A stretch of DNA of 64,000 nt. Origin: Paramoeba atlantica (lineage: Eukaryota; Protista; Discosea). Where the stretch lies: NCBI GenBank assembly GCA_977017575.1, contig CDRNVI010000178.1, positions 124,001 to 188,000 of the forward strand. The letters run 5' to 3'. The notes under the pieces were generated by a model, which saw only the letters and a list, made by a program, of their open reading frames with translations, did not search any database and was not told the DNA's origin. The translations under genes were made by a program, and so were the position numbers. Below are positions 18,531-64,000 of the stretch, one piece after another (position 1 is the first letter of the stretch; the number at the start of each line of letters is the position of its first letter).

Positions 18531-18627
18531 ACCCTTTCTTTCCTCAGTTTTCCACTTTTATTTTCTTTTTTTCCTTTCCACAATAAAGTGTTTATATTGC
18601 AATTTTAAGCTTCAAAATGGTTCAGTT

Positions 18628-38832: not shown

Positions 38833-39139
38833 CAGATGAGGGTTTCGATCCATTTTTCTTGAGAGTTTTCATTTTCACCTAGACACAAGCATTACATTTT
38901 TCGATCACCCATTCAATATCATTTAAGAAAACTTTTTGGATAGAATCACTCTCCATGGCATATATCAGTTGATGAGGGTTAGCTAAACCTAAGGAACAAT
39001 GCAGATTTATAATTGAAGAAAATCAAGAAGAGTGACATTACAGAATTTTTGTATAGTGCTAACATATCAATATTTGATTGGTTAAAAAATAAATTGAACT
39101 TTTTTTCATTTTGTTCTCTGTTTTTGATTCTGGCAATGA

Positions 39140-39900
39140 AAGGGAATGAGAAACTGCCAAAACAAACACCAAAAGAACCTCCAATCTCATTAGATGAAAT
39201 TATAGAAATTGATTTCATTACTGAGAAAATTCAACAAACAAAAAAGAGGAAACAAAAAACTGTTAAGAAGTGAAGAAAATGCCAAAAAAGAGGAGTGGAA
39301 AAAACACAGCAGCTGTTGCTGATGGAGACCATTCCTGTTGATGAAGAGAGTTTTAATTTGAATGAAACAAAGTGATGGGTGAACTCTATGATTCTTCTTG
39401 AATTTGAAAAGCAACTTGATTTTGCCTTGAAAAAACAAATTTGATTTTTTCGAATTTAGCTACCATTGCCAAAACAAATTTTCTGTAAGATTTTTTGGGA
39501 ACCATTGAAAAAATTTGAAAAAGTGAAGTTTCAAGTTGATAAATCAAGACAATGTGCTCGAATCTATTCTCAAGACAATTTAAAAAAACTGGATTCTTGC
39601 TTTTTGAACTATTTTGAATGGCAAACCAAAAAGATTTTCTTGCAAAGTTCTTGCAGCAATATTTTTTTAAATGAGGAGGTAAATATTGTTCTTTATCATT
39701 GGATTGAATTTGATGTTATTCAAACTGATAAAAATTGAATAATCAAGTGTGAATCTGAGTTGATTTTAAAATTTACAAAAAAAAAAAGTCAATTTGAATG
39801 CTGTGGAATCATTGAAGTTACAAATGCATCTGGCTTTTGTTGCACTTGAAAGAAATTATTTGTTGAATTATTTTGAAACAAAATTAAATTTATTTTACAA
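39140..39900 (+). pseudogene. Unknown decayed coding sequence
   Basis: Protein-like frames broken by stops; no motif recognised. Confidence 0.3.
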
Positions 39901-40335
39901 AAAAATCTTGAAAAAAATGAAACTATTTTTTAGATTTATTTCCATTATTAGTAAAATGTTAAAAAAAAAAGAGGAAAAAATTTAATTAGTAAATGAAAAA
40001 ATTAACTTTTTCAGTTTGTCAAGTTTTTGCTGCATTTGCCTTTGATGTAAAAGAATTTGATTCATCTGAATTTTGAAAAAAATGGATTAATAAAAAATAT
40101 TAATTGAAAAAAAGAAATATTCAAATCCAAAAAAAAAAAAATACTTGGGTTTGTGAGGATGTGTTATTACCACACATTGTTGATAGTTGGGGATTTTAAA
40201 GTGGTTGTAGGTTTGCTACTGCTGTTGATTGATATATTGGTTGTTGAGCCAATCCATAAATTTGTGAATTGCCATTTTATTGAAATTGGATTTGAGGTGA
40301 AGGATTAAAATTTTGTTGGAATTGTTGGGGTGATT

Positions 40336-40960
40336 TGTTGGGGTGAGACCTGCTTCCAACACGGAAGTTGTGCCTTTCAGTGCCTTTTCAGTTCCTTGAG
40401 CCTCCCTGAGCCTTCCCTGAGCTTCCTTGATGCCTTTTATCATGAGTTTTGGTCCTTTCGGAGAGCCCTGAGCCTCACAGACAGCCGCGCGCCATTTTAT
40501 CGTGATTTTAGCCAAAATCACGAGATTTTTAGCGCTCTTTTTATTCAGTTTTCGCGTTCGCGTTTTTGCTTCTTTTTCTTGCCGCTTTGCCGCTTTCTGC
40601 TTTCTTTCTGCTTTCTTGTCGCTCTCTCTCTCTCTCTTTGCTTTCCTTTGTGATCTTTTGGCTTGCCTTGCTTGCTTTCTGTTCTCTTCTTTTGTTGTCA
40701 TCATCTTTTGTTGTTTTCTTCCTTCTTTGGTTGCTGTGTAGACTTGGGATTCCGATTTGAGTTGAGTTTCGGTGATTCTGTGCTTTTCTCAGTTGTGATT
40801 CCTTTTGTTGTTCTTCTTCTTGCTTTTCTGTTTCTTTGTTGTTGTTTTCTTGTTCTGTTTGTGTTGGCTGGGGATCTTTCCCATAAAGGTTTTGATCCAG
40901 AGTTTCTGTTTCTCTTTCTTTTCTCTTGTTTTCTCTGTTGATCCTGCTCCCCTCCTCACA
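40336..40960 (+). repeat. 5' LTR (625 bp)
   Basis: TG...CA; differs from the 3' LTR by a 2-bp indel and three CpG transitions that I could spot. Confidence 0.97.
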
Positions 40961-40962
40961 CG

Positions 40963-40980
40963 TGGTGCTCCTGGTGACTT
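40963..40980 (+). promoter_or_regulatory. Primer-binding site (tRNA 3' end type)
   Basis: TGGTGCTCC... 2 nt after the LTR; tRNA identity not determined. Confidence 0.7.
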
Positions 40981-43900: not shown

Positions 43901-44117
43901 CTTTTGAACTCCTTCTGTTTTTTGGATTTTGCGGATTTTTGAGCATCCCAGAAGTCTAGTTCTCTTCAACCAGTATTCATTCCGGCGAAATCCCTTGAAT
44001 CTTTGTGGTCCAATTCCTTTGCCTGGATTGAGGAATCAAATTTTCTGGAAATCTTCCTTGAAATTACCGGCTTATTGTGTGGAGAATCCTTTGTTTCGAT
44101 TTCTTTCTTGAGTTACC

Positions 44118-47100
44118 TTGCCTGACTGGACCAACCTTGAATTATACACTGTATTTTGTGACTCTGGGACATCTTGTTTTTCGTCCAGCCTGAATTGGAT
44201 CTGTGACTTCTGTGACTTCTGTGACTTCTGTGACTTCTGTGACTTCTGTGACTTCCATGACTTCTGTGACTTCTGTGACTTCCGTGAGTTCTGTGACTTC
44301 TGTGACTTCCGTGAGTTCTGTGACTTCTGTGACTCCTGTGACTATACGCAACTATTTCGTTTGTTTGGAATCTTGGATCATATTTTTTTTTCAGGAGATT
44401 ATCATACGCCCTTATTGGTGAAAGGAAAATTGGGGAACAAAGAAGTGGTGTTTGCAATCGATTCTGGAGCGACAGTTGACTGCATTAGCGGTGATTTTTA
44501 CCAGAAACATTTTAGTCACTTAACCTTAGAAAAAGCGAGACATTCGAGTTGATTTCTCTCTGCTGGTGGTGATGCTTTACAATGTTTGGGGAGAGTAGCC
44601 TTGCCAGTTGTTTTGGGATCTGTGAAGAGGAACATTTATTTCTCTGTCTTGAACAATTTGACTTTGGATGTGATTTTGGGCCTGGGTTACCAAGTTGATG
44701 TGGGTTTGGATATTATGAACAGCCGTGGATTTGTGATTCCTCATGGTGGTATTCCTGTTCCCTTCTCTGTGAAAAAGAAAAAGGAAACTGTCATTGCAAG
44801 CGTGGTTCCCAATCCTCGACCTGTCGCTCTTCTTTACCCACAAGCTGTGAAAATCCCACCCCGTTCAAGAAGAGTTGTGAAATTGAAAGTTTCTGAAAAA
44901 ATGTCCAAAGATACAAATTACCAAGGCAAAAGTGATGGTTATGTCATGCCAGTCCATAGATATTGTCGAGATCTCGTACTCCAAGAGGGCCTAGTAAGAA
45001 TGGAGGGTGGAGAATCTTATGTTGCCATTTCGAATCCTCGCTTTCGAGAAGTCCGATTGGACAATTCCAAGCCAATTGCTCGTGTTGTTTATTGTGAGAA
45101 AAGTGATTTTGACAACATTATAATTACTGAGATCCCAGACTCCAATCTTTTCCAAGAGCACACCCCCGAGTCCATTGATGATCCCAATGAGACTAGTCCC
45201 ATTGATGATTTCAAGAATTTGAAGAGTGTACTGGTGGAAGATGATGATGATGAAATGACTTTGGAAGATACCAATATTCTGAATGCAATTCTTGTCAAAA
45301 GAGCCACTGCTGCCAGAGATAGGAGTGACAAGGGTGTCACAAAGGAAGAATTGGAAGATTTTCATGCCGATTTTCCGAAGATCCTAAATGAATTCAAACT
45401 GGAGGGTTGTGTTTTGAAGCCTGACAAGTTGAAAAAGTTGATGCAAACCTTGATGGACTATGAGGATGTTTGGACTAAACAAGAGAAACTCCAAAGAACA
45501 ACCTTAGCCGAACACCCAATCGAGGTGGAACCTGGCACCCAACCAATCAGAGAAAGAGTGAGGAAGACGACTTTCGCTCAAGACCAATTGATTCATGGCC
45601 ATATTTCGGATATGCACAAAAGAAATGTGATTGAACCCTCAAACTCTCCCTGGGCAGCCCCAATCCACTTGGTTGATAAGAAAGACGGAAAAATTCGATT
45701 TTGTATTGACTATCGATGCCTCAACAAAGTCACCAAGAAAGATGCCTATCCTTTGCCTAGTTTGAATGATATTTTGAACACCTTGGGGAATGCAAAATAT
45801 TACTCAACTGTCGATCTGAGCTCTGCTTTCTGGTCCATTCCAATCAGTAAGGAAGATAGAGAGAAAACTGCTTTCATTTCGAAATATGGTCTTTGGCAGT
45901 GGATCAGTATGCCTTTTGGTTTGACTAATGCTCCTGCAACTCAACAAAGATTTATTGAGAAAGTCTTGGATGGAATGCTTTGGGATTGTTGTATGGTTTA
46001 TGTTGATGACATTGTTATTTTCTCCTAAACGGAAGAAAAGCACATCGAAAAATCAAACAATTGCTCCAGAGATTGCGAGATGCGGGCCTTACGGTGAATA
46101 CTAAGAAATGTTCATTTGCTCAACCTGAATTCGAGATTCTCGGACACATCTGTTCTGGTGATGGTGTTTCTCCAAATCCTAAGAAGGTGTCTGCAATTCT
46201 TGATTACCCAATGCCAGAGGATCGACCTGCCTTGCACCGATTTTTGGGACTCGTTACCTGGGTTGCAAAATTTATTCAGAATACTTCATCAAAAACAATT
46301 AATCTCCAGAAGTTGTTGCATGAGAAAGAGCCTTTCAAGATGGAAGAAGATCACATTGAGGAATTTGAATCTATCAAGAAAGCTTTGGCAGAACCTCCCA
46401 TGTTGGCTTACCCTGAATTTGAGAAACCTTTCCATGTTCATGTTGATGCCAGCAAGAACGGTTTGGGCGCAATCCTTACTCAGTTGGATGAAAATGAGCG
46501 TCACAGAGTGATTGCCTTTGCAAGTGCTCTCCTCAAAGTTGCACAGAAGAAGACGACAGCTTCTGTTTTGGAATGTATTGGTGTTGTTTGGGCTGTTACT
46601 TATTTCAGACAGTATGTCCATGGGCGCTCTTTCTATGTGTATACAGACCATTTGGCTTTGGTGACAACATTTAAGACTCCTTCAACAAGTCAGACACTTG
46701 ACAAATTAGCCACTCGCCTGTTGGGTTATGATATGCACATTATGTATGCTCCTGGAAGTAAAATGACCAGTCCTGATGCATTGAGTCAAGCCAAGTATGT
46801 GAAATATGAAGGTGATCCTCCTGAATATTGTGGGAAGATTGGTGATTTGCCTCTTCAATTTCCAGACCAAGGAACTGATGTGGATGAACGAGTTGGTAAC
46901 CTCAGAGGAAAACTGAACCGTACAGTTAACTCTATTGTGGAAAATCAGCCAATAATGGGATATGATTTGGTGGTGAGAACTTCAAGTGATGGAAGTTGTA
47001 CAGAGTGGATATTTGAACCTGTCTCAGAGAAGAAAAGTGGTATGATGGTGAATGCAATTTCTGCAAAGAAACCAAGAAGAAAAAAGTCAATCCAGTCAGA

Positions 47101-49816
47101 AGAATTGAGAGATAAACCATTAGAAGAAACTCCTTGCTCTCCGGAACTTGTTGGGTCTTCTAAACCTGTTTATAGTAGCGAGAAAGATGATGTTCAAAAA
47201 CTTGGGGAAAGAAGTCTGTGCATTCAAGATTTGAGAGTAAAAGTCGGTCCTAGAGAACGCAAGATTCAGGATTTGTGTGTCCAGAGGCCAACAACAAACC
47301 AAGAGTCCTCAGGTCAATCATACTCTGAACTCCAGATAATTGAGGATTCAAGTTCAACTGAATTGGGGATTATGAATGGCTCTTTGACTGGAGACCCTTT
47401 ATTTGATCTAATGAAGGAGAATGAGATGAATCAAGGGTCTGATGGGAATCCTGCTTTGGGTGATGGAGACTGTATTTCAGTCAATCCAGTTTCTGTTCTC
47501 CAAGCACATAAGGAATCCAATGTTGATGAGGACTCAAGGGAAGTTGAAATGGATGCTCAAGTCGATTGGAAACGTTCTGGGAAACGATATGAGATAGACG
47601 GAAGAGAATTTGTGTTTGGCACAGCCCCTCTTCCAGGTTTGAGAGTGGAAGACAAAGTCCTGGGACCGGCAGTTCAAGAATCATTGTGTGATTTGAAAAA
47701 GAAAACCCATGTTGATGGTATGAAATGGTGTCCATCCGGTGGAGATGGATGTAGAAGCCTACCCGACGATGGTAGCCGTTCTGTTGAGACAAGCGATAAG
47801 CCTGAGAGTGTCAATATTCATGATGTACAAACCCTTGCTGGTTTCAATTCTGAAAATTGTTCTTCTCAGTTGGTTAGTGGAGATCCTGATACTCAAAATC
47901 TTTATGAGAATCCTGATACTCACAAATTGCGCTGTGAACATACGAATGTGTTGTCTGAGCCATGCCAGCCTGTCCAGGAATCTTCCGAAACCGTGACTCA
48001 CAGATTGAGAACTAGAAAACAGAAGGAGAGAGTGGAAAGTAAAGGAATGGAGATAAGTGAAGAAGAACAAGATTCAGAATCAGGAAAAGGAAAAGATTCA
48101 GAAGAGGAAAGTGAAACTAACAAACCATTAACAGATTACAAGAGCAAACACCCATCAGAATTCTTAATAGATGATAGGAAACTAATCAAAGAACAGGATA
48201 AGGATAACTGGATCAAATCAATTAAGAGAAGATTGGAAACAGGAAAATGGCCAAAAGATAAGAATGAGAAGAACAGATTGCAGAGAAAGGAAGGAGATTT
48301 TTACCTTGCAGATGGGATTCTTAGAAAAGTAGACCCAAGTGTCCTCCCAAATGCACTTCCACCAGCAGTACTTCCCGACCATTTAATAGGTGCAGCACTT
48401 CTCCAATTTCATGTTGACCCAATTGCCGGACATCTTGGAGGTTTATTAACTTACTTAAAAATCAAATCCAGATTCTATTTCCTAAAGATGTACACTGTGG
48501 TGCGACAATTTTGCAGAACTTGCCTAACTTGCCAACTCAACAAAACTGGAAGAGTGGACCAACCTCCAGCTGGAGAAGAAATAGAACCAGAGGGATTTCC
48601 AGGAATCATTTTGCATGTTGATAACACCCGAGTCAGCAGGACAGCCTGAGGCAACAACCACATTCTAAATATTTCAGACAGGTTCACAAAATTTCACAGA
48701 TTCTATGCAACAAAAGGAGTTTCGGCCATTCTTACTGCAAACAAACTGCTGGATTATGTCTGTACTTTCGGCTGCCCAGTGAAGATTATTTCAGATCAGG
48801 GATGTGAATTTGATGCAAAACTGACCACTGAGTTTGGAAAGATGATGGGAGTGAACCTGAAATGCACAACTAGTTTCAACCCAAGAGCAAATGGAGCGGT
48901 CGAGAGACCCTGGAGAACACTCAAGGACATGTTCAAAGCTTATGTTAACACAAGACAGGATAATTGGGACACATTCTTACCGCTTTTGCAGCTTGCATTC
49001 AACACCGCCCAGAGTTCAACAACAAATTTCACTCCTTATTTTCTAATGTTTGCAAGACAGGCCATATTACCCTTGGAAGTTCATTGGGACATTGCATCCA
49101 GACCCACAATGACAAGAAGCAAGTATATTAAATCTTTACAACAGGAATTGCCTGCGATTTTCGAATTAGTTAGGGAACATGTTAGTTCTTCAAGGAAGAA
49201 ATCACAGTTGGATCAGGAGAAAAGAAACCCTGTGAGAGAAACTTTGCTGGTCGGAGATTTAGTTTTGTGTGAGAGGAAACTCAAGAAGAAAGGCCTCAAC
49301 CCGAAATTATTACCAAGATATGGGAATGTAATTTACCAGGTGGTAGAAAAGCCCAATAATCATGCTGTTGCCCTCAGAAACATCCATTCTCAAGAAATGC
49401 TGCCGCACCTCATGAATGTCAGAAGAGTTAAGAAATGTAGAGTCACAACTTTGTGAGATGTACCAGGAGTTGAGATAACAAAAATACTTGCTGAAAGAGG
49501 TAATGAGAAAAAAGAATATTTAGTTGAATGGTTAGGTTACAGCCAAAAGAAGAATTCATGGGTTGGAGCAGCTTCATTGAAAGGAAATCACCTTCTTTTC
49601 CAGTTTAGGAGAACAAATGCAATCACTTCAGCAGTAGGTAGAGAAGAAGAATCAAGTTCTGATATTGAGTTGGAAGAGGAAGATTCAAGATTTGAGGGAG
49701 AATTAAGTGAAAGAAAAGAAAGTCCAGATTCAGAAATGGAGACAAGTGAAAAGGAAAGTTTTGAGTCGAACGGGCTGGTATTGGACAAGGACTCGGATTC
49801 AGACTTTCTGGGATGA
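44118..49816 (+). pseudogene. pol: pol: protease, RT, RNase H, ~460-aa insert, integrase, chromodomain, acidic tail
   Basis: DSGAT; YVDD; VDAS...TDH...DALS; HVDPIAGH...CRTC; SDQG...NGAVE; KEYLVEWLGY...NSWV. Stops at 44550, 46026, 48647, 49454 and one frameshift near 46050. Confidence 0.95.
44202..44345 (+). repeat. 9-bp minisatellite (TGTGACTTC)x16, in frame with the protease (CDF repeats)
   Basis: Directly visible; variants HDF, REF, CDS, CDY. Confidence 0.97.
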
Positions 49817-50395
49817 GAAACTAACTTTCGTGGTTGGATAACCCCTATTGCTTCTCTTTATTGAGTTGTTTCCTTTCTTTTGTTGTTTGAGATTTGGTTG
49901 TCTTTGCTATTAATCAATTTCGAAGATTGTTTTGACTATGTGACTGGTTCGGGATATTGGTTTCAAGAATTGCAATCCTGTTATGCTTCCTTCTGCCCTG
50001 GGAGACTGTAAATATTGTGAATGCTGTAAATATGATGAAGATTTGGGTTTACTGGTTTCCCTGGACAGAGGTCCTAAATATATCAAAACATTTTTTTTCA
50101 AGTAAGTCCCCAGCCATTGTGTTTTGTGTTTGTTCTCTTTTCTGTGTTTTGTTTTGTGTTTTGTTTGTTTTATTCTCCTGTCATCCCCCTTGGTGAGCTG
50201 CATTTTACGATTTGTTGACACCCCGAATTGATTCCTTGGGTCTTCTGCTGCTGATTCCCTTCTTTTGATTGCTTGGTCGGAGAATTGATTCTGATTTTGT
50301 GGATTCCCATGGATTTCTTTCATCTTTTTGGACCCTGTTGAGTTTCTGGCCTCTTTTCTCTTGGTGCCTGCAACCCCACACTCTTGTTTTGTTTC

Positions 50396-50406
50396 AAAGG
50401 GGGAGG
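50396..50406 (+). promoter_or_regulatory. Polypurine tract
   Basis: AAAGGGGGAGG immediately before the 3' LTR. Confidence 0.9.
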
Positions 50407-51029
50407 TGTTGGTGAGACCTGCTTCCAACACGGAAGTTGTGCCTTTCAGTGCCTTTTCAGTTCCTTGAGCCTCCCTGAGCCTTCCCTGAGCTTCCTTGAT
50501 GCCTTTTATCATGAGTTTTGGTCCTTTCGGAGAGCCCTGAGCCTCACAGACAGCCGCGCGCCATTTTATCGTGATTTTAGCCAAAATCACGAGATTTTTA
50601 GCGCTCTTTTTATTCAGTTTTCGCGTTCGTGTTTTTGCTTCTTTTTCTTGCCGCTTTGCCGCTTTCTGCTTTCTTTCTGCTTTCTTGTCACTCTCTCTCT
50701 CTCTCTTTGCTTTCCTTTGTGATCTTTTGGCTTGCCTTGCTTGCTTTCTGTTCTCTTCTTTTGTTGTCATCATCTTTTGTTGTTTTCTTCCTTCTTTGGT
50801 TGCTGTGTAGACTTGGGATTCCGATTTGAGTTGAGTTTCGGCGATTCTGTGCTTTTCTCAGTTGTGATTCCTTTTGTTGTTCTTCTTCTTGCTTTTCTGT
50901 TTCTTTGTTGTTGTTTTCTTGTTCTGTTTGTGTTGGCTGGGGATCTTTCCCATAAAGGTTTTGATCCAGAGTTTCTGTTTCTCTTTCTTTTCTCTTGTTT
51001 TCTCTGTTGATCCTGCTCCCCTCCTCACA
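50407..51029 (+). repeat. 3' LTR (623 bp)
   Basis: TG...CA, followed by TSD GATT. Confidence 0.97.
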
Positions 51030-53960
51030 GATTGAATAGAAAGTATTTGATAGGAAGTTTGGTTTTGTGGAATTGATTGAAAATTGTAATTTGGTTGGGT
51101 TTGAGAAGATTGAGGAAGTGGAAGTTGAATTATTGTTTGTGGAGTTGAAAATGTTTCATAAAAAGTTGGTTTTTGTTGAGGAAAAAATGGGTTGGATTGA
51201 ATTTGAATAACTTGAGGTATTGATGGTGGTTGATTTTGAATAAAAAGATAGGAGTTTGTTGCTCTTTCTTTGAATGGAATGGAGGTGGAATTTGATTGAA
51301 AAGACTGAAGTGGTAGTTGTTGAATTATAGATTTGTTTTGATTTATTGGATTGGAGGAAGTGGAATTAGAGTGGAATTGTTGAATGTGATCAAGTGTTGG
51401 TATGTTTGAAATCATTGGCTCAAAAGTTAGTGGATTGATGTTTAATTGTGATTGTTTCATTTTTGTTGAAGAAGAGTGGAGTATTAATTGACTGGAGATA
51501 GGTTTTTCAGGTTGTAAGGATTGGTCAGTTTCAATTGGTGAAGGAGATTGTTGAAGTTTTGGTGATTGGAGAAGTGGGGAACCTTGTGGAGATGAGGTTG
51601 CTGGTAATGAGTGATCAGTTTCCTTATTTGTGTTGGCTTTTTTTTGCTTTTTTTCATTTGGGAGGGAATTGAAAATGTAATCTTCTAAATGGTTGTGTCG
51701 TGTGGGACGCAGGGAGGGTTTTGAAGTTTGTTTCTTATTATTTTGAGGATATGCAGTTTGAGATTGCTTGGGGATCATTGAGGGAAGAGGAGAGGTTTCT
51801 TGGGCCCCCCCAAAGGTAAAAGAGAAGTGAAACAACCAAAGTTCAAGTACCCTGCCTTGCAAGTGTTTTATGATGGCTCTGGGCATGTAGACCCTCACAT
51901 CGGGGGATCTGGGTATGTGATTATTAAGGAAGGTTTGGAGGTTGGAGGTGGATTTGAAACAATCCCACTAAGTTCAAATAATTTGGGTGAGTTTTCAGGA
52001 TGCTTAGCTGGTCTACAACAAGTTATTGGCTTTGGGCAATGTGTAGAGATGGTGGGAGATTGTAAAATTCTGACTGAGGCAGTGCCTAAGACGAAACCGA
52101 TTGATAACTTTGAGCTCAATGAGATCCTATCTGAGATCAGAAATATTGTTGAGAGTAAATTTGCCAAAGTGGAGTACACTCATGTGTATCGTGAATTCAA
52201 CAAGAGGTCAGATGCGATTGCAATGGCAGCAAGTCACTCTGAAGAGGATGGGATGGAAGCTGTATTTGATAGGAACTGGGATCTAAGATCAAAACAACTA
52301 GCAACAACCAGTGAGGAATGGATTATCGAGAATTCCAAGCTGTGGAAGTGGGTGATGGAACCATTGGATTTGGATTGGAGCTTCCCTGTGAAGAAAGTTC
52401 AGTTTAAGAGGAGGTTTAAGGATAAGGTGATTACAACTAATAATGTTTACTTCCCAGTACAAGCTGCACTAGATGGGGTGATGATTTCTCCTGTGTTCAT
52501 TTCAGATGATATTGTTAAGTGGTTTCCAGAAAGAGCTGCACCTGGAGAGATGTTAGAAAGTTTTGTTGAAAAAGAAAACCAAAAATGGAAAGAGAAGTAC
52601 AAGCAAGCAAGGAATTGTTGGTTGAAGAGTGCAATGAGACCTTCCATTGTAAGGAAGATTATTAGGCCTATTAAGGTTGTTGAGAAGAAAAGAATTTTGA
52701 AAGAGATTTGAATGAGAAATAGAAAGAAACATTAGAGCTTTTGGCCACTAAGTTGGCACTGAAGTGGGTTGATCCTACTTAATTATAACAATTTAATTTA
52801 AGTGTATTCTTGGGTGTCCAGATTACACTTCATTTCAATAAATGACATCTCTGATGTCTAAAATTAAAAAAAAAAAAAAAAAAGAGAGGTTTCTTGGGCT
52901 GATTTTTCCTTCCTCTTGCGCTTTGGCATTTTCTTTCCTTGCTGAAACTCCTTTGAGGCTTTTTGGTTGGTTGATTTTTGCCAAGGGAGATGATGGTCAG
53001 TGTTCAAGGCCTTGATGAAGAGGTAATCAGAACTTGGAAAAAGAGAATCTACTCTGTTCAATTGAATCTTTTCTTTAATCAACAGTGTTGAGTGAATGAG
53101 TTCAAAAACATTCCTTGAATTGAGTGGTTTGGAGGGGTTCAACTTCTCTAAAATTGCTTGGTTGGTTGTAGGGAAATTATTTTCTCAAATAAAAATGAAA
53201 ACTTCATTCAGCAATGAATCAAGGAGTTTTTTCTTACTCAGAACCAGCAAATAATCCTTTAGAAGTAAAAGTGGGCACAGAGTTAGTGATGTTGATGGAT
53301 TCCATGGTTTATCATAAGAATTACTTCTAATGAAAAGGTTCCCTTGATTTGGAAAGGGTAAGCAGAGTTGGAGCAAGCAGGAATATTCTTATTTCCTCTG
53401 ACTACAGAGGGTTTCAACTTAACCAACAAGTGGTTTCTTTTCATCAAAGATAAGAGGCCTCAAAAGGGGAGGGAAAGTTTTGTTGCTTTGCAAATTCTGT
53501 AATTTTCCAGGATTCAAATACCAAAAGGAACCTTCTTCCAGAACCTCTTCCCAAATCCAGAACTGAGGGTAAGTTGAAAACTCACCAATTCCTGAGCTGA
53601 CTTTCCAGCAAACTGATGAAAAAAAAGTAATTTCCTTTTTTGTTTGTTCACTAAAGTTGAAATATTTGTTTTTCTTATAGTCAATTTGAGGTGAGTTTGT
53701 GTCCACTTTTATTATGGTTTCGAAGGTGGGGAGACTCATGCCAACCATAACATTCACTTCAAAAAATCCATTTTGGAACCACCACAATAATTTGAGTATT
53801 CAATGTAACCTAGGGCAAAATGCTGTGTTACAATCGAAATAATTGAATCCTTTGGAAATATCAGAGACTCCAACGAGATAATTGGTGACAAGTTTGGTGT
53901 TTTTTTCAATTTTTGATTTTGTAATTAAACTGGAAAACCAACCAAAGCAACAATCAAGAA
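51030..53960 (-). pseudogene. Unknown gene with Q/S/P-rich C-terminus, split by a LINE and by the chromovirus (continues at 40335-40150)
   Basis: Removing both inserts joins KEKSAQETS-PLPSMIPK and ILSIQS-PQQFQQNFNP in frame. Confidence 0.7.
51806..52883 (+). mobile_element. 5'-truncated L1-like LINE (RNase H + 3' end)
   Basis: FYDGSG...NNLGEF...VGDCK...NKRSDAIA; poly(A); 16-bp TSD GAGAGGTTTCTTGGGC (51790-51805 / 52884-52899). Confidence 0.95.
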
Positions 53961-54188
53961 ACCTCAATAATAAACTGAACTGTTTTGAATCTCAGAATTG
54001 CAATATAAACACTTTATTGTGGAAAGGAAAAGAAGATAAAAGTGGGAAACTGAGGGAAGAAAGGGTCAAAAGATCTTTTTTATAAAAAAACTTTTTTTGC
54101 TCTTTCATACTGTTTTTCCTCAATTCTTGAATTTATTGAATTATTTGAATCACAAAACACAGCCTTTTTTTCCCCTTTTTCAGTGCTT

Positions 54189-55816
54189 TATGGCTCATAA
54201 TGCATAGAGGGAAAAAAAAACCCACAAAGCACCAAAAAAAGGCAAAAAAAGGCAAAAAAAAGTCATGCACCAGTTTTTATTGAAATTTCAAAAAACACAA
54301 AAAAAACAAGCTTAAAAAAATCAAACAAGCAGCCCTGTAAATGTGCTGTGGACCACTTCCATGGTTGACTGGAGCACCAGAAGATGAGGATAAAGAGGAT
54401 GAAGAGGAAGAAGAGAAAGAAGAGGATGTGGAACCATACATCAACTGGGTGGCTCTTTGTTTTTGAGCAGTTGTTGAATTTGCAATGTAACCTTTTGCAA
54501 TCTGCAAATTTTTTCAATCCCCAGCATTCATTAAGTCCAATTTCATAGCTTCTGAATTGACTATTTCTGTTGCTTCTGTTCTCCAAAATGAATGTCTACT
54601 GTAAGACACTTCTTCTTGTGGCAATTCAAGGAAATCTACCATCTTCTGGACCAAGTTTGCAATGTAGTTTCTTCCAATTGAACTCTTGTTGAAAATTTGG
54701 TTCTTTGTACTGAAACTATTCCAGAGATGAGTGTTCTTTCTGAAATCTTTTCTGTGTGATTTTTCAAGGAGACCAAGATGCTTTTTCCAGAGTTTTACAA
54801 CATTTGCTTTTCCTCCATGAATAATGTAAGGGTGTGTTGTGAGTCCACCCTTCTTGTGTTGCAAATTGATCACCAAATGGTCATCTTTTAGCACCACATC
54901 TTGAACTTTTAATTGAAAAACCTCAATGGCTCTCCTCAAAGTGAAATAAGTACAAAGAGTGATTAAAGAATCTTGTTTTGCTTTGGCTTCATTGAATATG
55001 GGTGCTTTTTGACAAAGAAATTCTTTAATTTCAAGCCAAGTGAAAACACCAGCTTTCTTTTTCTTGTACTTCTTTTCAAATTTTTGCATCAACACATTCA
55101 CATCATGCAATTCCTTCAAGTTCACCCCATGAGCAAAGAGACAAAATTTCTTCACATGTGAAATTTTTGGAAAGAAGGAGCCAAAGGAAAGAATACACTT
55201 GCTGGTTTTTCCACTCAGAGGATACAAAAATTCTTTAAAAAATCGAAAAATCAACTTCTTGGAGAAAACCACTTCCTCTTGTTGGTCCAACCAGTATTGA
55301 AATCTACTGATTGCAATTAAAAACGGTCCAACAGATGTGCTTTCCTTCAGTTGACAAACACTTGGCTTTTTTTTGTTAAAAAACAGCACTTCCCAAGTGA
55401 GATGAGGGATGTTGATTATTAGTAGCAAATCCACTTTTTGCTTTGCTCTTTTTTCTTTCTTTCTTGAAGTTGCAGTGTCATTTTCATCATGCTTTTGTTT
55501 CACACCCTTGCTCTCCATCCTTAACAAAAAAGAAAAGAGTGACTTCTTTTTTCTTATTTTACTGTTACTTTTTTGAATTCAAATTTTTTGAATTTTCATT
55601 TCATTAAAAATAAATTGAAGGTTCAAAAAACAGAATTGAAGAAAAAACAACTTGCAATATAGCAAAAAATGTTGTTTACAACAAGTGTGCATTATAAAAA
55701 CAGAATTTAACTCATTCCCTTTCTCAGCTTTCAGGTTTTTTTTATACCTTCAGGCTAGAGGCCCTCAAGTCTAAAAGAAAACCCTCAAGCTTTGAAAGGA
55801 AACAAGTGCATTATGG
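54189..55816 (-). mobile_element. Crypton-like tyrosine-recombinase transposon
   Basis: Single YR gene bounded by TATGG direct repeats (54189-54193, 55812-55816) inside 21-bp quasi-palindromes. Confidence 0.8.
54277..55518 (-). pseudogene. Tyrosine recombinase (~413 aa, one internal TGA at 54514)
   Basis: KAGVFT..EI..FL; TLRRAIE (R); HKKGG (K); RHSFWRT (HxxR); GD*K (W site); AKGY (Y). Confidence 0.88.
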
Positions 55817-55852
55817 TTCATAAGGCACACCGGTGCAAAAACAGCTATTTTT

Positions 55853-56372
55853 GTGGGAAAGCAAAAATACTTTTTTTTTATTTCAACACTTCAAAAAGTT
55901 CAATTTGAAAAACTTTTTGAATTTTTTTATTGTTGAAAAATTTTAAAAAGAAGTAGTGGTTAAATATTTCAAATGAATTAAACTCCCTCTGAAAAGGATT
56001 TTTTAGTTTTATTGAAGGTTTAAAACTTTTTCTACAAAAACTTTTTTTTTTGTGGGGAAGTAAAAATACTCTTTTTTCATTTCAATACCTCAAAAAGTTC
56101 AATTTGAAGAATTTTTTGAATTTTTTTATTGTTGAAAAATTTTAGAAAGAAGTAGTAGCTAAATATTTCAAATGAATTAAACTTCCTCTAAAAAAGATTT
56201 TTTAGTTTTATTGAAGGTTTAAAACTTTTTCCACAAAAACTTTTTTTTTTGTAGGGAAGCAAAAATACTCTTTTTTTATTTCAACACTTCAAAAAGTTTA
56301 ATTTGAGGAACTTTTTGAATTTTTTTGTTGTTGAAAAATTTTAGAAAGGAGTGGTGGCTAAATATCTCAAAT
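55853..56372. repeat. 199-bp tandem repeat, ~2.6 copies
   Basis: Units start at 55853, 56052 and 56251. Confidence 0.92.
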
Positions 56373-56774
56373 ACAATTTGTGGGGCAGGCAGGCAAGGCA
56401 AAAAACTTGAAGAGTTTGAGAAAAATGGGCCACTTTCAAAACGCTCGTGAGATTTTACAAGAATTGAACATTTCTTGGAAAACTTATCAAAGCAAATCCA
56501 ATCAAAAATTTGGGATTTAAAAATTGAGGGAAGTGAAGGAAACCATGGTGTTTTTGAGTTTGAAGGAAGTGGGGTTTGTTTTTGAAGCTGTCTTCTTGCA
56601 CCTGATCACATGATTGCATGTTGAATGCATTCTACTTGGATCATTACTTCCAGGAGATTCCTTTCGAAGCTCAAAGAAAGGTCTTCACCTCCTTTGATTT
56701 TGCTTTTTTGACAAAAGAATTGAGAGTTAAATAATAAATGGGATCAGAAAGGTTGGTTTTGAATCTATCCAGAA

Positions 56775-57588
56775 TTGAATGATAGACCCAAAATTTTGGA
56801 ACAACTTTCAGATCAATCAGGTGGGTTTTTAAAGCACTTGAATTTATTGGTTGAGGAAAACTTTTTAAATGTCATTTCTGGGGATTTATACATTTCATCT
56901 CAGAGTGGTCATAATGACACATTTTTTTTATTCCCAGGTAGCTTCAGAAGAGGAGATTTACAAAATGTCAATTTTTCAATCTTTGCTTCTCTCTTTGAAC
57001 CCCCTTCTGCCAAAATGTAAGCAGAATGCTCAGGGGTGGAACCTCATAGCTCTTGGACTTCACAAAATTCAAAACTCTTTAATGAAATGGGTTCAAACTC
57101 AACATCTAACAGATGACATGAAGAAAATTCTTTTGTCCCTTTTAATTGTATATGAGATAAGAGAGTATTGCTTGATGAAGTGGATAATTGGATTAAAAAA
57201 GAATTCAAACTTTTTTGCAGAACAAATTGGGATGTATGAGAAATTTCAAACAGCTTGGAAGGAAACAGGAAAAGATATGAGAGTTCAACTTCCAATGAAA
57301 TGTACTCAACAAATTTGGATTGGAGGAGGCTGTGGAACCCTCCTCCACAAAGATGCTTCAAACTTCGGTTTGTCATTTTACCAATATTTGGGTTTCAATT
57401 GGGGGGAAAGTGATTGTGGTGTTGGTCTCCCCAAACTTTGAATCCTTTGGAAAAATTCACCAGAATCTGCAATGGCTATTTGTGCTTGTTGTTACTTTTA
57501 CATGAGTTTGCCACTTGATTTAGGGTTGAAAATGATAGGTGTGACTTTTGTTAATCATAAAAAAAAATCAAATCCTCTGAAAAACTAA
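56775..57588 (+). pseudogene. TET/JBP-like 2OG-Fe(II) dioxygenase homolog B
   Basis: CGTLLHKDASNFGLSF..YLG (HxD at 57346-57354)...GLPKL*ILWKNSPESAMAI.A..YFYMSLPL...KMIGVTFVN; one TGA in the core, probable frameshift near the 5' end. Confidence 0.6.
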
Positions 57589-57669
57589 ATAAAAGGAAAG
57601 CAACACACAAACCAAAGCCCTCAAAAAAATTGGTTAAAGTGAAATTGATAAAAAACTTGTAAATTTTAT

Positions 57670-59554
57670 TTCTCATCACCATCTTTTTTCAAAGAAATTT
57701 CAGTTTTGAGATTGTACATTCATGTGAGGAAAAGGTCTTCCTGAGCAGCTCAAATCAATTTTGGGTTTGTCACCACTTCACTTCTTTGATTTAAATTTGT
57801 TTGGGTTGCTCGAATTTCTTGTGGGATATCCAAAGAGGTTTGATATTGATTTGCTAAAGAATGGCTGTATCAAAAACAAAATCCAGTTGTGAGAACTTTA
57901 GTGTTCAGATTTGCAGAACCTTGTTGGCTACTCCAATAGAAGTGCATACAATCCAAGTAGTGGACCTGCTCCCCAGCTTCTGCTACCCAAGGTTGCAAAT
58001 TCCCAAACTGATAATACGTATCTGTTGCATGAGCTTCCAGAATGTGGAAATAAATTCACCAGGTGGAACCCATCTCCCCTCCCCAATCTATGAAGCTTTC
58101 CTTCCAAGAACCAATTTTTTTTTCAAAATTAATAGTGATTACTTCATGATTTGACCCTTTTGAAGGGTCACTTGTCAGCATTTGAAAACATTCTCAAAAA
58201 ATAACCCACAATGATGTTGTGGATGGTCAATTTGGATTGCAATAAAAGATTCTTTTGACATTTTCCAATACTTGCTGCATTTGAGTGCCCATGTATTGCC
58301 CCAATTTCCAATTTCCATCATCACCAACTTAGAATTGAAAAGAAATTTTGCATTTAGAAAACACAAAAACCAGCAACTTCAATGATTTGGTTTTCAATGA
58401 GTAATTCTTCTCAAATTGTTCTTTTGTGGAGCTTTTCTCATATTTTTCCTCCAGACAAGATTTCAACAAAAGGAAAAAGGAAGGTGAAGAAGAAGAAGAT
58501 GAAAAGGAAGAGGAAGAGGAAGAGGAAGAAAATGAAGATGAGGAGGATAAGAAAGATGAAGGTGAGTTCAACAATGAGGATGAAGGTGAGTTCAACAATG
58601 AGAATGAACATGAAGAGAAATCTTGAAAGTCAGCCCACCACTTTGCCATTAAATCAATTCTCAAGATTAAATGAACTGAGTTCTTTGGTATCTTTTACTT
58701 ACAAAAGTTTGATTTCCATTTGTCCTGCAATGACTCACTGTTCAATCCTTCCAACCATTTTTCCTCTTCTTGAAATTGTATATTCTCATTAGAATATTGA
58801 TAAAAAAGCAAGAAATTAAGTTCATCATGGCATTTCTGTTGAGACCTCCCCCAACCCCAATCTGAAAGTGTACTTTTTCTGGCATCCACTTATTTTCCTT
58901 CAATTCATTTTGAATTTGAGTTTTGGCAAATTCATCAAGAACAGTTTCAACAATATTCATTGCAGTCTCAAATTTTGTTTCAAAAAAGCTTCACTTTAAA
59001 ATGACATAATTTATCCACAATTCAAGAAATTTCATTCCATCAAATGTTTCATGGTCACAAAAAGCTTTCATCATATTTAGCAACCATTTTTATCCATTCA
59101 AGGTTTGAGGTGGGTTTGGAGGCAATTGATTCTTTTTGCTTATATTTTGTCCACTTTCCAAAAATCTTTGCTCTTCTTCCAAATACCTTCCAAAATATCA
59201 ATTTTCAGCTTCAAATTCAAAGAGAAAATCCTTCAAAAACAAAATTGACTCTTTGTTTTCAGTGATTGCAAGTAGTTCACACTGTTTTTCTTCTTCTGAC
59301 AACATCCCAGGAAGAGAATATATCTTTTTTTTGTTTTCAATTTCAATATTTAATAAACAAATTCATTCTTTCAATGGAGATGAGTAACTGCCACTTTGAG
59401 ATCACAAATTTTTAAGAGTCAATTGAACTTGAATGTTGAGCTTCTGATAAACAAGATGACAAGCAGTTTTGTGAAAGTTTTGAATTGCCTCAATCTTCCC
59501 CTTAACTTGGAAAAAATGAGATGAAAAGGTATTTGCTGGGTTCTTGGGGAAACC
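57670..59554 (-). pseudogene. RAG1/Transib-like DDE transposase, decayed, 5' end cut by copia A copy 2
   Basis: IYFHILEAHATDTYYQFGNLQPWVAEAGEQVH (~57960-58052) matches the spacing of the RAG1 H-x4-H / W-x2-E-x2-E motif; LILRIDLMAKW (~58650) is a candidate second Asp; first-Asp site reads QIGVGGG. Confidence 0.6.
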
Positions 59555-60081
59555 TGTTAGAATATCAGTATTCTTGGTTTGAAGAATGTTTGACTTAATG
59601 GAGAACATCATTTGTGAATTCTATGATCACGAGTTATGCTATCCTGAAGCGCCTCATCTTCCTCTTTCGAATGGTGCTAGTCCCATCTGAATCTGACAAC
59701 TACACACCGAGATATTGATCAATCATTGAATTGTGCCTTCAAAAATACCTTTGCCCTATTTCAGACCCAATTTGATTGCATAGTTTATTCTCCATATTCT
59801 GATCTTTCAGCCTGTGAATTTATTTGTGCTGACGTCATCTGTTGTTCCCTTCCTTAAACTTGTTGTGTCTTTGTGTCTCTTATGTGTGCTTTTATTTGTG
59901 TGTGTTTCTCTGTTTTTGCACTTGGTGTCACATTGTTAAATATGTGCTTGAAACCTGTTCATAAATAAACACATGAGAGACTTTGTTTTTTTCACGTTTC
60001 TGGCTCTCACCATGGAATGAAGTTTGCACCTTTCTTTTCTTTTCTCAGCAATCTTCTTCCACCAAACCCCACCACTTGACA
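59555..60081 (+). repeat. 5' LTR of copia A copy 2 (527 bp)
   Basis: TG...CA; matches 1666-2192. Confidence 0.93.
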
Positions 60082-60105
60082 GATTAAGAGTCTAGGCTCT
60101 CTGCC
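60082..60105 (+). promoter_or_regulatory. PBS, half-tRNA-Lys(CUU) type
   Basis: GATTAAGAGTCTAGGCTCTCTGCC. Confidence 0.7.
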
Positions 60106-60432
60106 TGATCTTGTCATCAGTAGAACTTCAGTGTTTTACACCTTTTTTTGTTTTATTTTTTGTTTTATTTTTGTTTTATTTTCTGTTTTTTTGTTTTTTG
60201 TTTTTGTTTTTGTTTTCACTCATTCGCACCTGTTCTCTCATTCGTTCAACAACTTCACTCAATTTCTTTTTATTGCTCTTGCTCTCTTGTTCCTTTTGCC
60301 TGTCTTTCTGTTTGTTTTAATTATGTGTTTTCACAATTTTGTGTGGTTTTCGCAGTTTTTCTTGCTCATCTCCTCCTGTTGCTGTTTCTTGCCTTTCTCT
60401 CTCACTCTCTTACATTCGCCACATCCTCAACT

Positions 60433-63400
60433 ATGGAAGATGATTACAGAGTAGTAGATTGGCCAGAGTTTGAACCAAAGAACAAGACATGGAAGGGTGC
60501 ACTTGAGATTAATAAACTCAAAGGTGAATCCACCATTGAATTCATGCTCTGGTGAAAAGAGATGCTCATTCGGCTCAGCACCCAAAATCTCATTCATCAT
60601 CTATTCCTCAATAAAGTTCCTACAGGTGAACCTGTTCTAGTCAAGTTTGAGGAGGAGCTGGAGGAGGTTACAGAAAAAATGGAAGAAGCTGAGAAGAAAA
60701 GAATTTTGGCAGAAAGAAAGGAGTTGGAGGCAAGACACAAAGAGAAATTGGAGTATAAGCAGCAAATTAACCAAAGACGTTTTGATGACCATATGGACAA
60801 TCAAATGAATCTTACAAACTTACTGAATAAGGTGTGTGTTGGTCGAGCAAAGGGGTATCTCAGTGATTTGAAGAGAAGAACACCAAAAATTATTTGGGAC
60901 ACATTGATCTTAAATCTGAGTACTGTAATTGTTCACAATGTAAAGGAAGTGAAAAGTAAGTTAGAGGATTGTTGTATCAGAGAAAATGAGACAATCTCTA
61001 GTTTTGAGTTGAGACTGAAGGAGTTATTTCTTCACGTTGAAGCGTTGAAAGGGAAACTGATACCAATGAACAAGAAATTGGGTTACATAGCTTGTGGATC
61101 ACTGTATGTGCAGAAGGATCGAAGTCCCCAAGCTTTGCTGTTAAAATTTTTGATGAAATTGCTAAGACAAACAAGATGATCCCCAAACAAACTATAAGAA
61201 AGGCTCCCCCCAAAGGTAAAAGAGAAGTGAAACAACCAAAGTTCAAGTACCCTGCCTTGCAAGTGTTTTATGATGGCTCTGGGCATGTAGACCCCCACAT
61301 CGGGGGAGCTGGGTATGTGATTATTAAGGAAGGTTTGGAGGTTAGAGGTGGATTTGAAACAATCCCACTAGGCTCAAATAACTTGGGTGAGTTTTTGGGA
61401 TGCTTAGCTGGTCTACAACAAGTTATTGGCTTTGGGCAACGCGTAGAGATGGTGGGAGATTGTAAAATTCTGACTGAGGCAGCACCTAAGACAAAACCAA
61501 TTGATAACTTTGAGCTCAATGAGATCCTATCTGAGATCAGAAATATTGCTGAGAGTAAATTTACCAAAGTGGAGTACACTTATGTGTATCACGAATTCAA
61601 CAAGAGGTCAGATGCGATTGCAACGGCAGCAAGTCACTCTGAAGAGAATGGGATGGAAGCTGTGTTTGATAGGAACTGGGATCCAAGATTGAAACAACTA
61701 GCAACAACCAGTGAGGAATGGATTATTGAGAATTCCAAGCTGTGGAAGTGGGTGATGGAACCGTTGGATTTGGATTGGAGCTTCCCTGTGAAGAAAGTTC
61801 AGTTTAAGAGGAGGTTTAAGGACAAGGTGATTACAACTAATAATGTTTACTTCCCAGTACAAGCTGCACTGGATGGGGTGATGATTTCTCCTGTGTTCAT
61901 TTCAGATGATATTGTCAAGTGGTTTCCAGAAAGAGCTGCACCTGGAGAGATGTTAGAAAGTTTTGTTGAAAAAGAAAACCGGAAATGGAGAGAGGAGTAT
62001 GAGCAAGCAAGGAACCGTTGGTTGAAGAGTGCAATGAGACCTTCCATTGTAAGGAAGATTATTAGGCCTATTAAGGTTGTTGAGAAGAAAAGAATTTTGA
62101 AAGAGATTCGAATGAGAAATAGAAAGAAACATTAGAGCTTTTGGCCACTAAGTTAGCACTGAAGTGGGTTGATCCTACTTGATTATAACAATTTAATTTA
62201 AGTGTATTCTTGGGTGTCCAGATTACACTTCATTTCAATAAATGGCATCTCTGATGTCTAAAATTAAAAAAAAAAAAGAAATTGGGTTACATTCGAGATT
62301 CCATGCCGCAACAATGTTGGGAAACCTTTCGAGGATTGCTTAGAGTGGGAGAGTGGACAGTGGAGAGTGCTTTCTTAGAGTTAAAAGAAATCAAAGGTAG
62401 TCACTCCAGTGCCAACAAGAAAAACAAGCCTTGAAGACCAAGGAGAACACCGCTGCTTATGTTGCTTTTCGGAAGAAGAATAACCCTGCTGCCAATCCTA
62501 ATCAACAAGGAAATGTTGCCCCTCCTCGCCAAGGAAGACAAGGAAATGGCCCTCCTCACCATAGTCCTCTAATTCCTTCTCCTCAAACATGCAACCAATT
62601 TCAAAATTACCCTGGATGGGAAGATCCTCCCACCCCTCCAGCTAAAGCCTGTTTTCGTTGTAGTGCCACCAGTCACATTGTGAAAGGTTGCAACACAAAC
62701 CCAGCAAACCAAAGTGTTGTGGGATAACAAGCCAAGGTGAATTTCGATGCTTTTGTTCAAAAGATCAACACTTGGAAGATGAAAATGAATAAAATCAATA
62801 TTCCTGTTTACTCCTGTTGTGTTTCTGCTCTCATTTCTTCTTCTCAATCTTCGATTCAATCTGCTTTTGTTGCAAAACAATCAAATGGAGCAACTGCTCT
62901 TGCTGATTCAGCTTGTTCAAATACAATTGCGAATGATCCAAATCTTACAACAAAAAACGCTCCACCCGCAATGACCATAAGCATCAAGCAAGTGAATGGT
63001 GATCTGATTCCTGTTACAATGCAAGGTGACTTGGCAATTCATTCTGATTTGCCGCCTCTTCAAGACGTCTCTGTAGTCCCCAATTGTGAAATGAATCTTC
63101 TCTCTGTGGCTCACATGTGTGAAACTTGGGATGCTTCTGTTGTTTTGGATTCTGACCAAATTTGTGTGATGAAAAAGAAGATCAATTTGAGTGATTCCCA
63201 GACGATTTTGAGTGGTCCACAGAACAATGGCTTGTATTATTTGGCTTTACCCAGTCGAACCAACCATCAACAATCTTATATTGCTGAAGAAGTTACTCAC
63301 CCAAAAAATGAAACCCCTGAGGATGCTTCTTCATCTCAACCTCTCCACAAGAAAAGAATCTGTAGAACCCTCTGTCCGACCCATGAGAAAGAATGGAAAT

Positions 63401-64000
63401 ATTGGCATAATAGACTGTGTCATTTTTCTGGTTTGAAGAGGACTATTAATGCTCATGCGGTTGATGGTTTGCCCCTGCAATATCACAGATTGAGAATGGA
63501 TCAAAATGTTTGTACTGCTTGTGAGTTGGCCAAAGCGAAAAAGAAGAGTCATACCCCTGGTACGAGAACAAAATGAAAACTCAGTGAAATGTTGCACATT
63601 GACAACCATGAAAAAAATATACTTTCTTATCAGAAGAACAAATACTCTCTCTCAGTTGTTGAAGACTACTCCAAGATGGATTTATCTGAATTCCTCAAGA
63701 AAAAGAGTGATGCTGGCGAAGTGCTGATCAATCTGATTGCAAAGCTTCAAAGACAATTGGATGTGAAGGTCAAAATCATTCAATGTGATGGTGCTTGAGA
63801 ATTTGTCGGTCCTGCAACGAAAATTGGACAATATTGCGCTGAAAAAGGAATTCATATCAGATTTTCTAGTAGAGATGATTCTGCTGAAAATAGTGTTGCT
63901 GAATGTGCAAATGAGACTCAATGGAACACTGCTCAAGCAATTCGAATCCATGCTGGATTGCCTGAACAATTTTGGGATTATGCTGAAAAACTTGCAAGTG
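60433..64000 (+). pseudogene. copia gag-protease-integrase, interrupted
   Basis: CFRCSATSHIVKGC knuckle; LHID...VVEDYS...IIQCDGA...ENSVAE...LPEQFWDYA; stops and LINE insert. Confidence 0.9.
61089..62275 (+). mobile_element. 5'-truncated L1-like LINE (RNase H + 3' end) in copia gag
   Basis: 347-aa open frame; poly(A); 17-bp TSD AAGAAATTGGGTTACAT (61072-61088 / 62276-62292); empty site visible in copia copy 1 near 655-675. Confidence 0.97.

Follow-up and report, generated by a model that had tools for sequence, protein, structure and literature searches.

Results

Gene content of the locus and its sister copies

The stretch of DNA analysed here, which we call the window, comprises 64,000 nucleotides of Paramoeba atlantica contig CDRNVI010000178.1 (assembly GCA_977017575.1), and its positions 55826-59554 carry two convergent genes that appear to form the right-hand third of a DNA transposon copy. 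The minus-strand gene is the pseudogene of a putative transposase (57666-59556, codons ~63-683 of the short form described below, including the stop), as delimited by a codon-level alignment of nine copies and by the relatives P0015-P0021. Its frame, read from 59554 to 57669, contains IYFHILEAHATDTYYQFGNLQPWVAEAGE (window 57873-58055), the H-x4-H and glutamate motif that a first-pass annotation had noticed in a stop-riddled frame and likened to RAG1. Facing it on the plus strand is the pseudogene of a TET/JBP-like dioxygenase (TET-2, 56636-57588) with the strings LHKD, GVGLPKL and KMIGVTF; its end at 57588 is separated by 78 bp from the stop codon of the minus-strand gene (57666-57668), close to the ~80 bp given in that annotation.

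Both genes were compared with sister copies on contigs of the metagenome assembly ENA ERZ24900291, found by a word-index search with a 190-amino-acid (aa) piece of the plus-strand gene. The piece has 90%-identical proteins in that assembly, and the contigs encoding them carry copies that are 93-95% identical to the window; the word-index homology searches gave matches only from this assembly, none of them annotated. Four sequencing runs, all belonging to one study, contain 26-40% of the words sampled, and none of the runs listed is recorded as RNA. Among the loci named below, L001 and L002 lie on contig ctg3419c (17.6 kb), L007 is contig ctg1822l and L008 comes from another species.

Extent and ends of the element

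The window is co-linear with ctg3419c 5511-12483 at 93-95% identity over 39051-40335, 51030-51805, 52884-54098 and 55848-59556, and we estimate the probability at roughly 0.7 that a single old copy of a cut-and-paste DNA transposon, bounded by terminal inverted repeats (TIRs), extends from 39037 past 64000. The left 47-bp TIR lies at 39037-39083 on the plus strand, reading ATTACAGAATTTTTGTATAGTGC... in the window and ATTACGGAATTTTTGTATGGTGCC... in less mutated copies. Homology to ctg3419c begins exactly at 39037, and the third copy on that contig has flanks unrelated to those of the window copy. The right end is beyond the window; six copies whose flanks are unrelated show it, and two copies show the left end. 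The left and right TIRs are perfect inverted repeats (ATTACGGAATTTTTGTATGGTGCCAACGTGTCAATATTTGATTGGTT, 47 of 47 positions matching), and the element terminates in ATTACGG..CCGTAAT. Among these six right and two left ends no copy with both flanks and no empty site was recovered. The CAC terminus that the first-pass annotation had proposed at 55826 proves to lie 22 bp inside a later insertion (54099-55847) that is absent from L001, and is not an end of the element; the matching GTG end that it had expected gives way to the termini just described.

Between the left TIR and the two convergent genes lies a third gene, ORF3 (open reading frame 3), which encodes 683 aa and is intact at L001 6581-8632 (minus strand) but split by insertions over window 40124-53967. 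The left segment of the element (39037-40335, plus strand, 93.5% identical to L001 5511-6792) holds small unassigned ORFs together with the beginning of the ORF3 region, the segment at 51030-51805 (minus strand, 94.8% identical to L001 6789-7564) the middle of ORF3, and that at 52884-54098 (minus strand, 93.1% identical to L001 7549-8763) its 5' part and a spacer. The N-terminal half of the ORF3 protein is structured and its tail is rich in Gln, Pro and Ser; the protein has no Pfam match. Upstream of TET-2, the 199-bp tandem array noted in the first pass was confirmed at 55848-56372 (plus strand; 2.6 copies with 91% matches by Tandem Repeats Finder); it is an internal feature of the element and occurs in every sister copy. 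The block that had been said to recur inverted at 17820-18530 does so, 17817-18533 matching 56723-56017 at 89%, and belongs to an inverted fragment of another copy at 17808-18627 (minus strand), which consists of the array plus the TET-like gene's 5' end and is 88-90% identical to unit 8638-9659.

Copies in long and short forms

That the two genes should co-occur within shared termini had been set beforehand as a test of the pairing. The dioxygenase and transposase genes adjoin in the window and in nine further places (two on ctg3419c, and L003, L004, L005, L006, L011, L012 and L013), with the same order, orientation and spacing within shared 47-bp TIRs; in L013 the transposase gene is reduced to its start. 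Since the same arrangement recurs at nine further places inside shared TIRs, the possibility that two unrelated genes came to lie side by side by chance can be excluded for practical purposes.

The copies fall into two forms. The short form, a unit of 7,461 bp, is represented by the window, ctg3419c, L006, L004b, L011 and L012, whereas L003, L005 and L004a carry an additional segment of 1,528 bp. The junction of the internal deletion that defines the short form lies at window 58925-58927 on the minus strand, with 58926 as the insertion point of the segment, which is present between these positions as L003 5634-7161 and is shared by L005 and L004. From the 7,461-bp unit and this segment the long form is inferred to measure ~9.0 kb; it would encode a transposase of ~1,190 aa, the convergent TET/JBP-like protein of ~330 aa and the 683-aa ORF3 protein. 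The missing segment encodes the first and second catalytic aspartates (D1 and D2) and the CxxC zinc motif, and since the deletion took both aspartates and CxxC, the short form could be moved only by transposase supplied in trans. The remainder of the transposase had been expected beyond a copia retrotransposon at the edge of the window. Only ~62 codons belong there, the half with both aspartates and CxxC having been lost by the 1,528-bp deletion common to most copies.

On ctg3419c there are three head-to-tail short-form copies, 99.5% identical, with the same stops and with spacers of ~300 bp. In the middle one the left TIR is missing its outer 14 bp, and a 20-bp direct duplication (ATCACCTTGCACACAATGTG) lies on either side of the copy; the triple array looks like the result of tandem duplication rather than of transposition. 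The suffix "c" of the contig name may mean that it is circular.

The minus-strand gene

In the sister contig the transposase gene occupies a single frame of 683 codons. The window copy has nine in-frame TGA codons, three TAA codons and one frameshift, and it keeps the H-x4-H (YFHILEAH) and the catalytic glutamate (AEAGE) without D1, D2, CxxC or the LHC motif of its relatives. A profile search of 1.84 billion representative proteins with a two-piece overlap alignment (A1) as query returned six relatives, P0015 to P0021 (E 2e-53 to 4e-36), and since the H-x4-H/Glu motif is kept in relatives drawn from so large a set, it is not a chance resemblance. Residues 300-524 of one of them, P0019, gave no match when scanned against the JGI metagenomes.

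The intact relatives have the motif order D ... D-x20-CxxC ... LHC ... H-x4-H ... E. P0019, P0021, L008 and the long-form ORF of L003 share CVF(L/V)MCGDL..WALF..C.GI.G.E.CP.C, in which the second aspartate is followed by CxxC, and in all four the succession MCGDL-x18-CP(C/Y)C ... H-x4-H ... EAGE can be read directly. LHCLLR(I/V)G(D/E)FAL is common to P0019, P0021 and L008, and the C-terminal module WRIY(F/L)HI..H..PW..EAGE to P0015-P0021 and the window family. In the D1 region (WKLHxD..) L007 and L003 are 32% identical over 387 aa (E 9e-51). FDGMKF and VGDDGNW were at one time taken for D1 and D2, and were dropped because the relatives place the true D2-CxxC block in the deleted segment. The signature described for the CMCT clade and RAG1, C(2)C + H(3-4)H (PMC12730594), is thus found in the relatives and in the long-form L003; the window copy retains only H-x4-H and the glutamate, owing to the 1,528-bp deletion. 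Nearest neighbours in a protein language model were RAG1_ZnH2/ZnC2 clusters for the C-terminal piece (0.96), and Transposase_21 (0.94), RAG1_RNase_H (0.92) and Plavaka (0.89) for the independent N-terminal piece. Together these observations support the assignment of the minus-strand protein to the CMCT-clade transposases (CACTA/EnSpm, Mirage, Chapaev, Transib/RAG1).

P0021 comes from the same metagenome assembly, where it follows an 865-aa ORF on L007. This relative (L007 1500-6130) has no in-frame stops, consists of two ORFs (865 and 645 aa) with a Cys-rich B-box-like tail, and has a CpG observed/expected ratio of 0.4. No TET-like gene stands beside the related transposase genes of L008 and L007, and none is present on the L007 contig. 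The L007 relative may be active without a TET gene, or it may be a gene that has been domesticated.

Predicted structure of the transposase relative P0019

Thirteen sequences went into the AlphaFold model of P0019, and confidence is confined to residues 121-231 and 298-443. Over 298-443 the block means of the predicted local distance difference test (pLDDT) are 58-94 and mostly above 70, and the part with D2 and CxxC is below 50. In Foldseek the top match of the model was HzTransib, and RAG1/Transib chains made up 24 of the top 50. Alignment with VIA-align gave Z 7.2 for HzTransib (118-119 aligned residues), 6.7-7.1 for mouse RAG1 (118-121) and 6.3-6.4 for BbRAGL (127-129); overall, model residues 302-444 match RAG1 822-959 and Transib 302-428 with Z 5.2-7.2 and a root-mean-square deviation of 3.7-4.9 Å over 117-129 residues. 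The offset between model and RAG1 puts P0019 H422, H427 and E447 on RAG1 H937, H942 and E962, the first two of which we take to be the ZnH2 histidines and the last the catalytic glutamate. The superposed model thereby reproduces the alignment of the window motif on these three residues that had earlier been made by eye. As a predicted model, the overlay supports homology with the RAG1/Transib module and no placement inside Transib.

The plus-strand gene

TET-2 is 88% identical to the intact protein P0002 (327 aa). Read against the sister copy, its lesions are a 34-bp deletion at ~56724, a +1 frameshift in a T-run at ~56925, a CGA>TGA change at 57439-57441 and the replacement of the distal histidine by tyrosine (CAC>TAC) at 57499-57501. 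P0002 is 32% identical to the paralog P0026 (326 aa), and in the intact copies of the two paralog families an HxD motif and a distal histidine are invariant (alignment A6): H248-K-D250, H299 and K309 in P0002, and H251-R-D253, H301 and R311 in P0026. The two histidines are 49-51 residues apart, and an arginine or lysine stands at +10 from the distal one. Tet_JBP clusters account for 52 of the 60 language-model neighbours (score 0.96). Judged from these sequence features, the plus-strand gene probably encodes a TET/JBP dioxygenase.

P0026 is the intact form of a second pseudogene in the window, TET-1 (36139-37248, plus strand), which is 30% identical to TET-2 (E 2e-23) and lies outside the element, just beyond the left TIR; the intact form has LHRD..YYHMSL..FRIMGAGF. 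In the mutated window copies of both paralogs the distal histidine is absent, unlike in the intact proteins. Further copies of the TET-1 family are found at L010 10001-10981, flanked by retroelement fragments, and at L006 1544-2502.

Nested insertions and other repeats

Four nested insertions break the window copy. A chromovirus, a Ty3-type long terminal repeat (LTR) retrotransposon, occupies 40336-51029 with LTRs 99.5% identical, TG..CA ends and a 4-bp target-site duplication (TSD), GATT; the empty site is present in ctg3419c. At 51806-52883 there is a poly-A retrocopy of an internal copia segment (A18 tail, 16-bp TSD gagaggtttcttgggc, 96% identical to 61202-62281), and this 1.08-kb insertion appears to be a copy of part of a copia transcript made in the manner of a long interspersed nuclear element (LINE). 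A Crypton-like tyrosine-recombinase element (54099-55847, minus strand), with a weak Phage_integrase match (E 0.031), is absent from L001, where the empty site is 8762/8763; it sits in a T-run of the transposon. Finally, a copia-type LTR retrotransposon (59557-64000, plus strand) severs the first ~62 transposase codons and the right end of the element; the sister contigs are uninterrupted there, and its LTR end matches an inverted copia copy at 657-2192.

The window also contains a foldback (palindromic) repeat family with arms of ~400 bp, at 11435-11815, 19989-20655 and 27265-27689. A further copy, at L003 7281-8110, is inserted in the long-form transposase gene.

Origin of the stop codons

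The window is AT-rich (GC 33-40%), and its CpG observed/expected ratio is 0.16 overall and ~0.02 in old repeats. Between 55848-59556 and L001 8762-12483 (3.7 kb) there are 195 substitutions; one is a transversion, and in 184 the window copy has undergone a C>T or G>A change. The sister has 77 CpG and the window copy 6 (92% of CpGs lost), and the remaining cytosines, in CpA, CpC and CpT, are changed at 7-10%, equally on both strands. Transitions likewise make up 132 of the 144 substitutions between the copia copies. The repeats look hypermutated, whether in a way that resembles repeat-induced point mutation (RIP) or by a methylation-driven process.

The last 220 transposase codons include six in-frame TGA, three of which are CGA in the sister and three TGA there too, and the single TGA within the dioxygenase gene is CGA in the sister copy. 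The stops come from near-pure C-to-T hypermutation (CGA>TGA, CAA>TAA), and neither from a variant code nor from ordinary decay. A variant nuclear code, under which the in-frame TGA would be sense codons and the genes intact, gains some appeal from the fact that reading TGA as sense lengthens many ORFs, which at first suggested a ciliate-type code, and that Trp of TET-2 stands opposite two of the TGA codons in TET-1. However, the CGA (Arg) codons of the sister copies at these sites rule out TGA as Trp, the TGA codons of the copia copies are paired with CAA or CAG, pointing to a CGN ancestor, TAA stops and frameshifts occur as well, and the intact proteins P0002, P0026 and P0021 are stop-free; we regard such a code as next to impossible. 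Between its protease and chromodomain the chromovirus has three in-frame TGA and 16 remaining CGA codons, despite its nearly identical LTRs, a state that is consistent with very fast CGA>TGA decay after insertion. The window copy is dead: it has the hypermutation stops, frameshifts and four nested insertions, and the distal histidine of its dioxygenase is replaced by tyrosine.

Discussion

We propose, at the probability of roughly 0.7 already given, that the stretch is a decayed, non-autonomous and internally deleted copy of a TET-carrying transposon of the CMCT clade. In an intact element the transposase would be expected to cut at the 47-bp TIRs, and the dioxygenase may oxidise 5-methylcytosine on the element DNA, which by analogy would allow the element to resist methylation-based silencing. 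Such anti-silencing by TET is the mechanism proposed for fungal TET-carrying transposons (PMC12730594).

Several results weigh against this proposal. The transposase gene has stops in all nine copies examined, so that none of these is likely to be active. Transposase pieces, relatives and family profiles drew blank in sequence and profile searches of Pfam, PHROGs and the PDB at E up to 1-10, and phmmer and hmmsearch of the pieces and family profiles against the PDB gave no RAG1 or Transib row at E up to 10. The scores of the structural comparison are modest (Z below 8, Foldseek E 0.53), and unrelated helical hairpins of 75 residues reach the same Z. To our knowledge, solved structures exist within the CMCT clade for RAG1 and Transib alone and for no CACTA-type transposase, so that comparison with the PDB cannot tell Transib from the clade's other lineages. 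For the dioxygenase, no Tet_JBP match was obtained in Pfam at E up to 10 and none in PHROGs or to the TET, JBP and NgTet chains of the PDB; its language-model recognition value of 2117 is below the tool's reliability mark, and the AlphaFold model of P0002, with a mean pLDDT of 34, failed to predict a fold. The termini, finally, are not the CA..TG that is usual for the CMCT clade. Since the published account gives 5'-CA..TG-3' ends "in most cases", with TSDs of 2-5 bp (PMC12730594), this does not exclude membership of the clade.

The failed fold prediction, the low recognition value and the blank profile searches are what would be expected if the element were as we describe it and the plus-strand gene encoded some other conserved accessory protein, with HxD...H being coincidental. 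We give this a small but real chance. It has to be set against the invariance of HxD and the distal histidine, with 49-51 residues from His to His and R/K at +10, across two paralog families that are only ~32% identical, against the predominance of Tet_JBP among the language-model clusters, and against a genomic context that fits the published TET-carrying transposons. The first-pass assignment of this gene to the TET/JBP-like dioxygenases is plausible in its motif layout and language-model neighbours, and has no counterpart in a Tet_JBP profile match.

The first-pass reading of the locus went further, placing the transposase with RAG1 and Transib. Its strongest form, a true element of the Transib/RAG1 lineage of the ProtoRAG kind with a TET gene in the place of RAG2L, could draw on HzTransib, RAG1 and BbRAGL as the best structural neighbours of P0019, on the convergent gene pair, which is also the arrangement of ProtoRAG, and on the (N/A)EAGE context of the glutamate, which resembles the SEGNE of RAG1. 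But RAG1 and Transib chains of the PDB, like every Pfam model, are without a sequence or profile match, the termini are not CAC..GTG, the language model puts Transposase_21 (CACTA), not RAG1, nearest to the D1-D2 region, and the top structural rank of RAG1 and Transib is forced by their being the only members of the clade with solved structures. We consider this form of the reading unlikely. What stands of it is relationship at the level of the CMCT clade; membership of Transib/RAG1 proper finds no support, with no profile match and with ATTACGG..CCGTAAT ends.

Within a TET-carrying CMCT-clade element, as we propose, a more specific suggestion can be made only tentatively, since we hold it to be somewhat doubtful: that this is an undescribed CMCT lineage nearer to Transib/RAG1 than to CACTA, with termini of its own (ATTACGG, 47-bp TIRs) and a TET/JBP gene in a non-fungal protist. 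If so, TET genes would have been captured by RAG1-type transposons outside the fungi, either independently or by inter-kingdom transfer of a rust-type (PU-like) TET gene. Nowhere is it clearer than in TET-carrying transposons that a mobile element can bring along its own counter-measure to DNA methylation, and the published examples have so far all been fungal. The range of hosts would be broadened, and a branch added to the parent clade of RAG1, by a family that has a RAG1-related transposase and lives in a strongly methylated genome that is probably not fungal. Dead and without the catalytic half of its transposase, the window copy is of value as a marker of the family and not for experiments, and the long-form copies and the intact L007 relative are more worth following. 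A host that is probably not a fungus is also indicated by a Utp21 fragment beside a copy of the element on one sister contig, for which human WDR36 gives a better score than Utp21 of yeast or Chaetomium.

Comparison with known systems

In fungi, TET-carrying transposons of many superfamilies have been described, including EnSpm in rusts, Plavaka in Agaricales and ESTA (PMC12730594, Kojima 2025), and the same paper cites Iyer et al. 2014 as the first notice of such elements. Like the fungal TET-carrying CMCT elements, the Paramoeba element combines a probable TET gene and a RAG1-similar CMCT transposase in a methylated host genome. ESTA transposases were recognised only through HHpred similarity to RAG1 (PMC12730594), and the Paramoeba transposase is likewise without a direct family match. 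For another TET-carrying lineage, PHISTA, an additional third protein is reported (PMC12730594), and a third ORF is present here. Furthermore, the string HRDKKDI of P0026 compares with HQDKKDI in a rust PU-type TET protein that stands directly before the ESTA-1_PGr row in Table S1 of PMC12730594. The termini differ: the 47-bp TIRs here end in ATTACGG..CCGTAAT, those of ESTA being CACCAC..GTGGTG, flanked by TA TSDs, and those of EnSpm CAC..GTG, flanked by TSDs of 3 bp. Nor is a sequence resemblance to Pfam Transposase_21 or Plavaka detectable in the Paramoeba element, and the host is fungal for the published elements and probably a non-fungal protist here.

In the comparison with Transib, RAG1 and the RAG1L of ProtoRAG (PDB 6pqn, 4wwx and 6b40), the predicted C-terminal module can be overlaid on RAG1 822-959, where its H-x4-H falls on the ZnH2 histidines and its glutamate falls on E962; a CxxC ~20 residues after the second aspartate is a further shared feature. 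The element differs from Transib and RAG1 in the absence of profile-level similarity and of CAC heptamer-like ends, and in a transposase of ~1,190 aa with long low-complexity inserts. ProtoRAG likewise has a convergent partner gene; here the convergent partner is the dioxygenase-like gene, and no RAG2-like partner was found by sequence, ORF3 being without a Pfam match. The TET-carrying IS3EU elements of rusts (PMC12730594), which we compare with ours by their published description, have TIRs of more than 30 bp ending in TAYGG..CCRTA, and TACGG..CCGTA occupies TIR positions 3-7 here; their TSD is 6 bp, and the transposase here bears the CMCT signature. The first-pass annotation had known of no described example of a RAG1-like transposase paired with a TET gene. 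That pairing has in fact already been published for fungi, with the TET-carrying EnSpm, ESTA and Plavaka elements of PMC12730594, and the element described here is a new example of it, set apart by its termini, by the missing hidden Markov model link and probably by its host.

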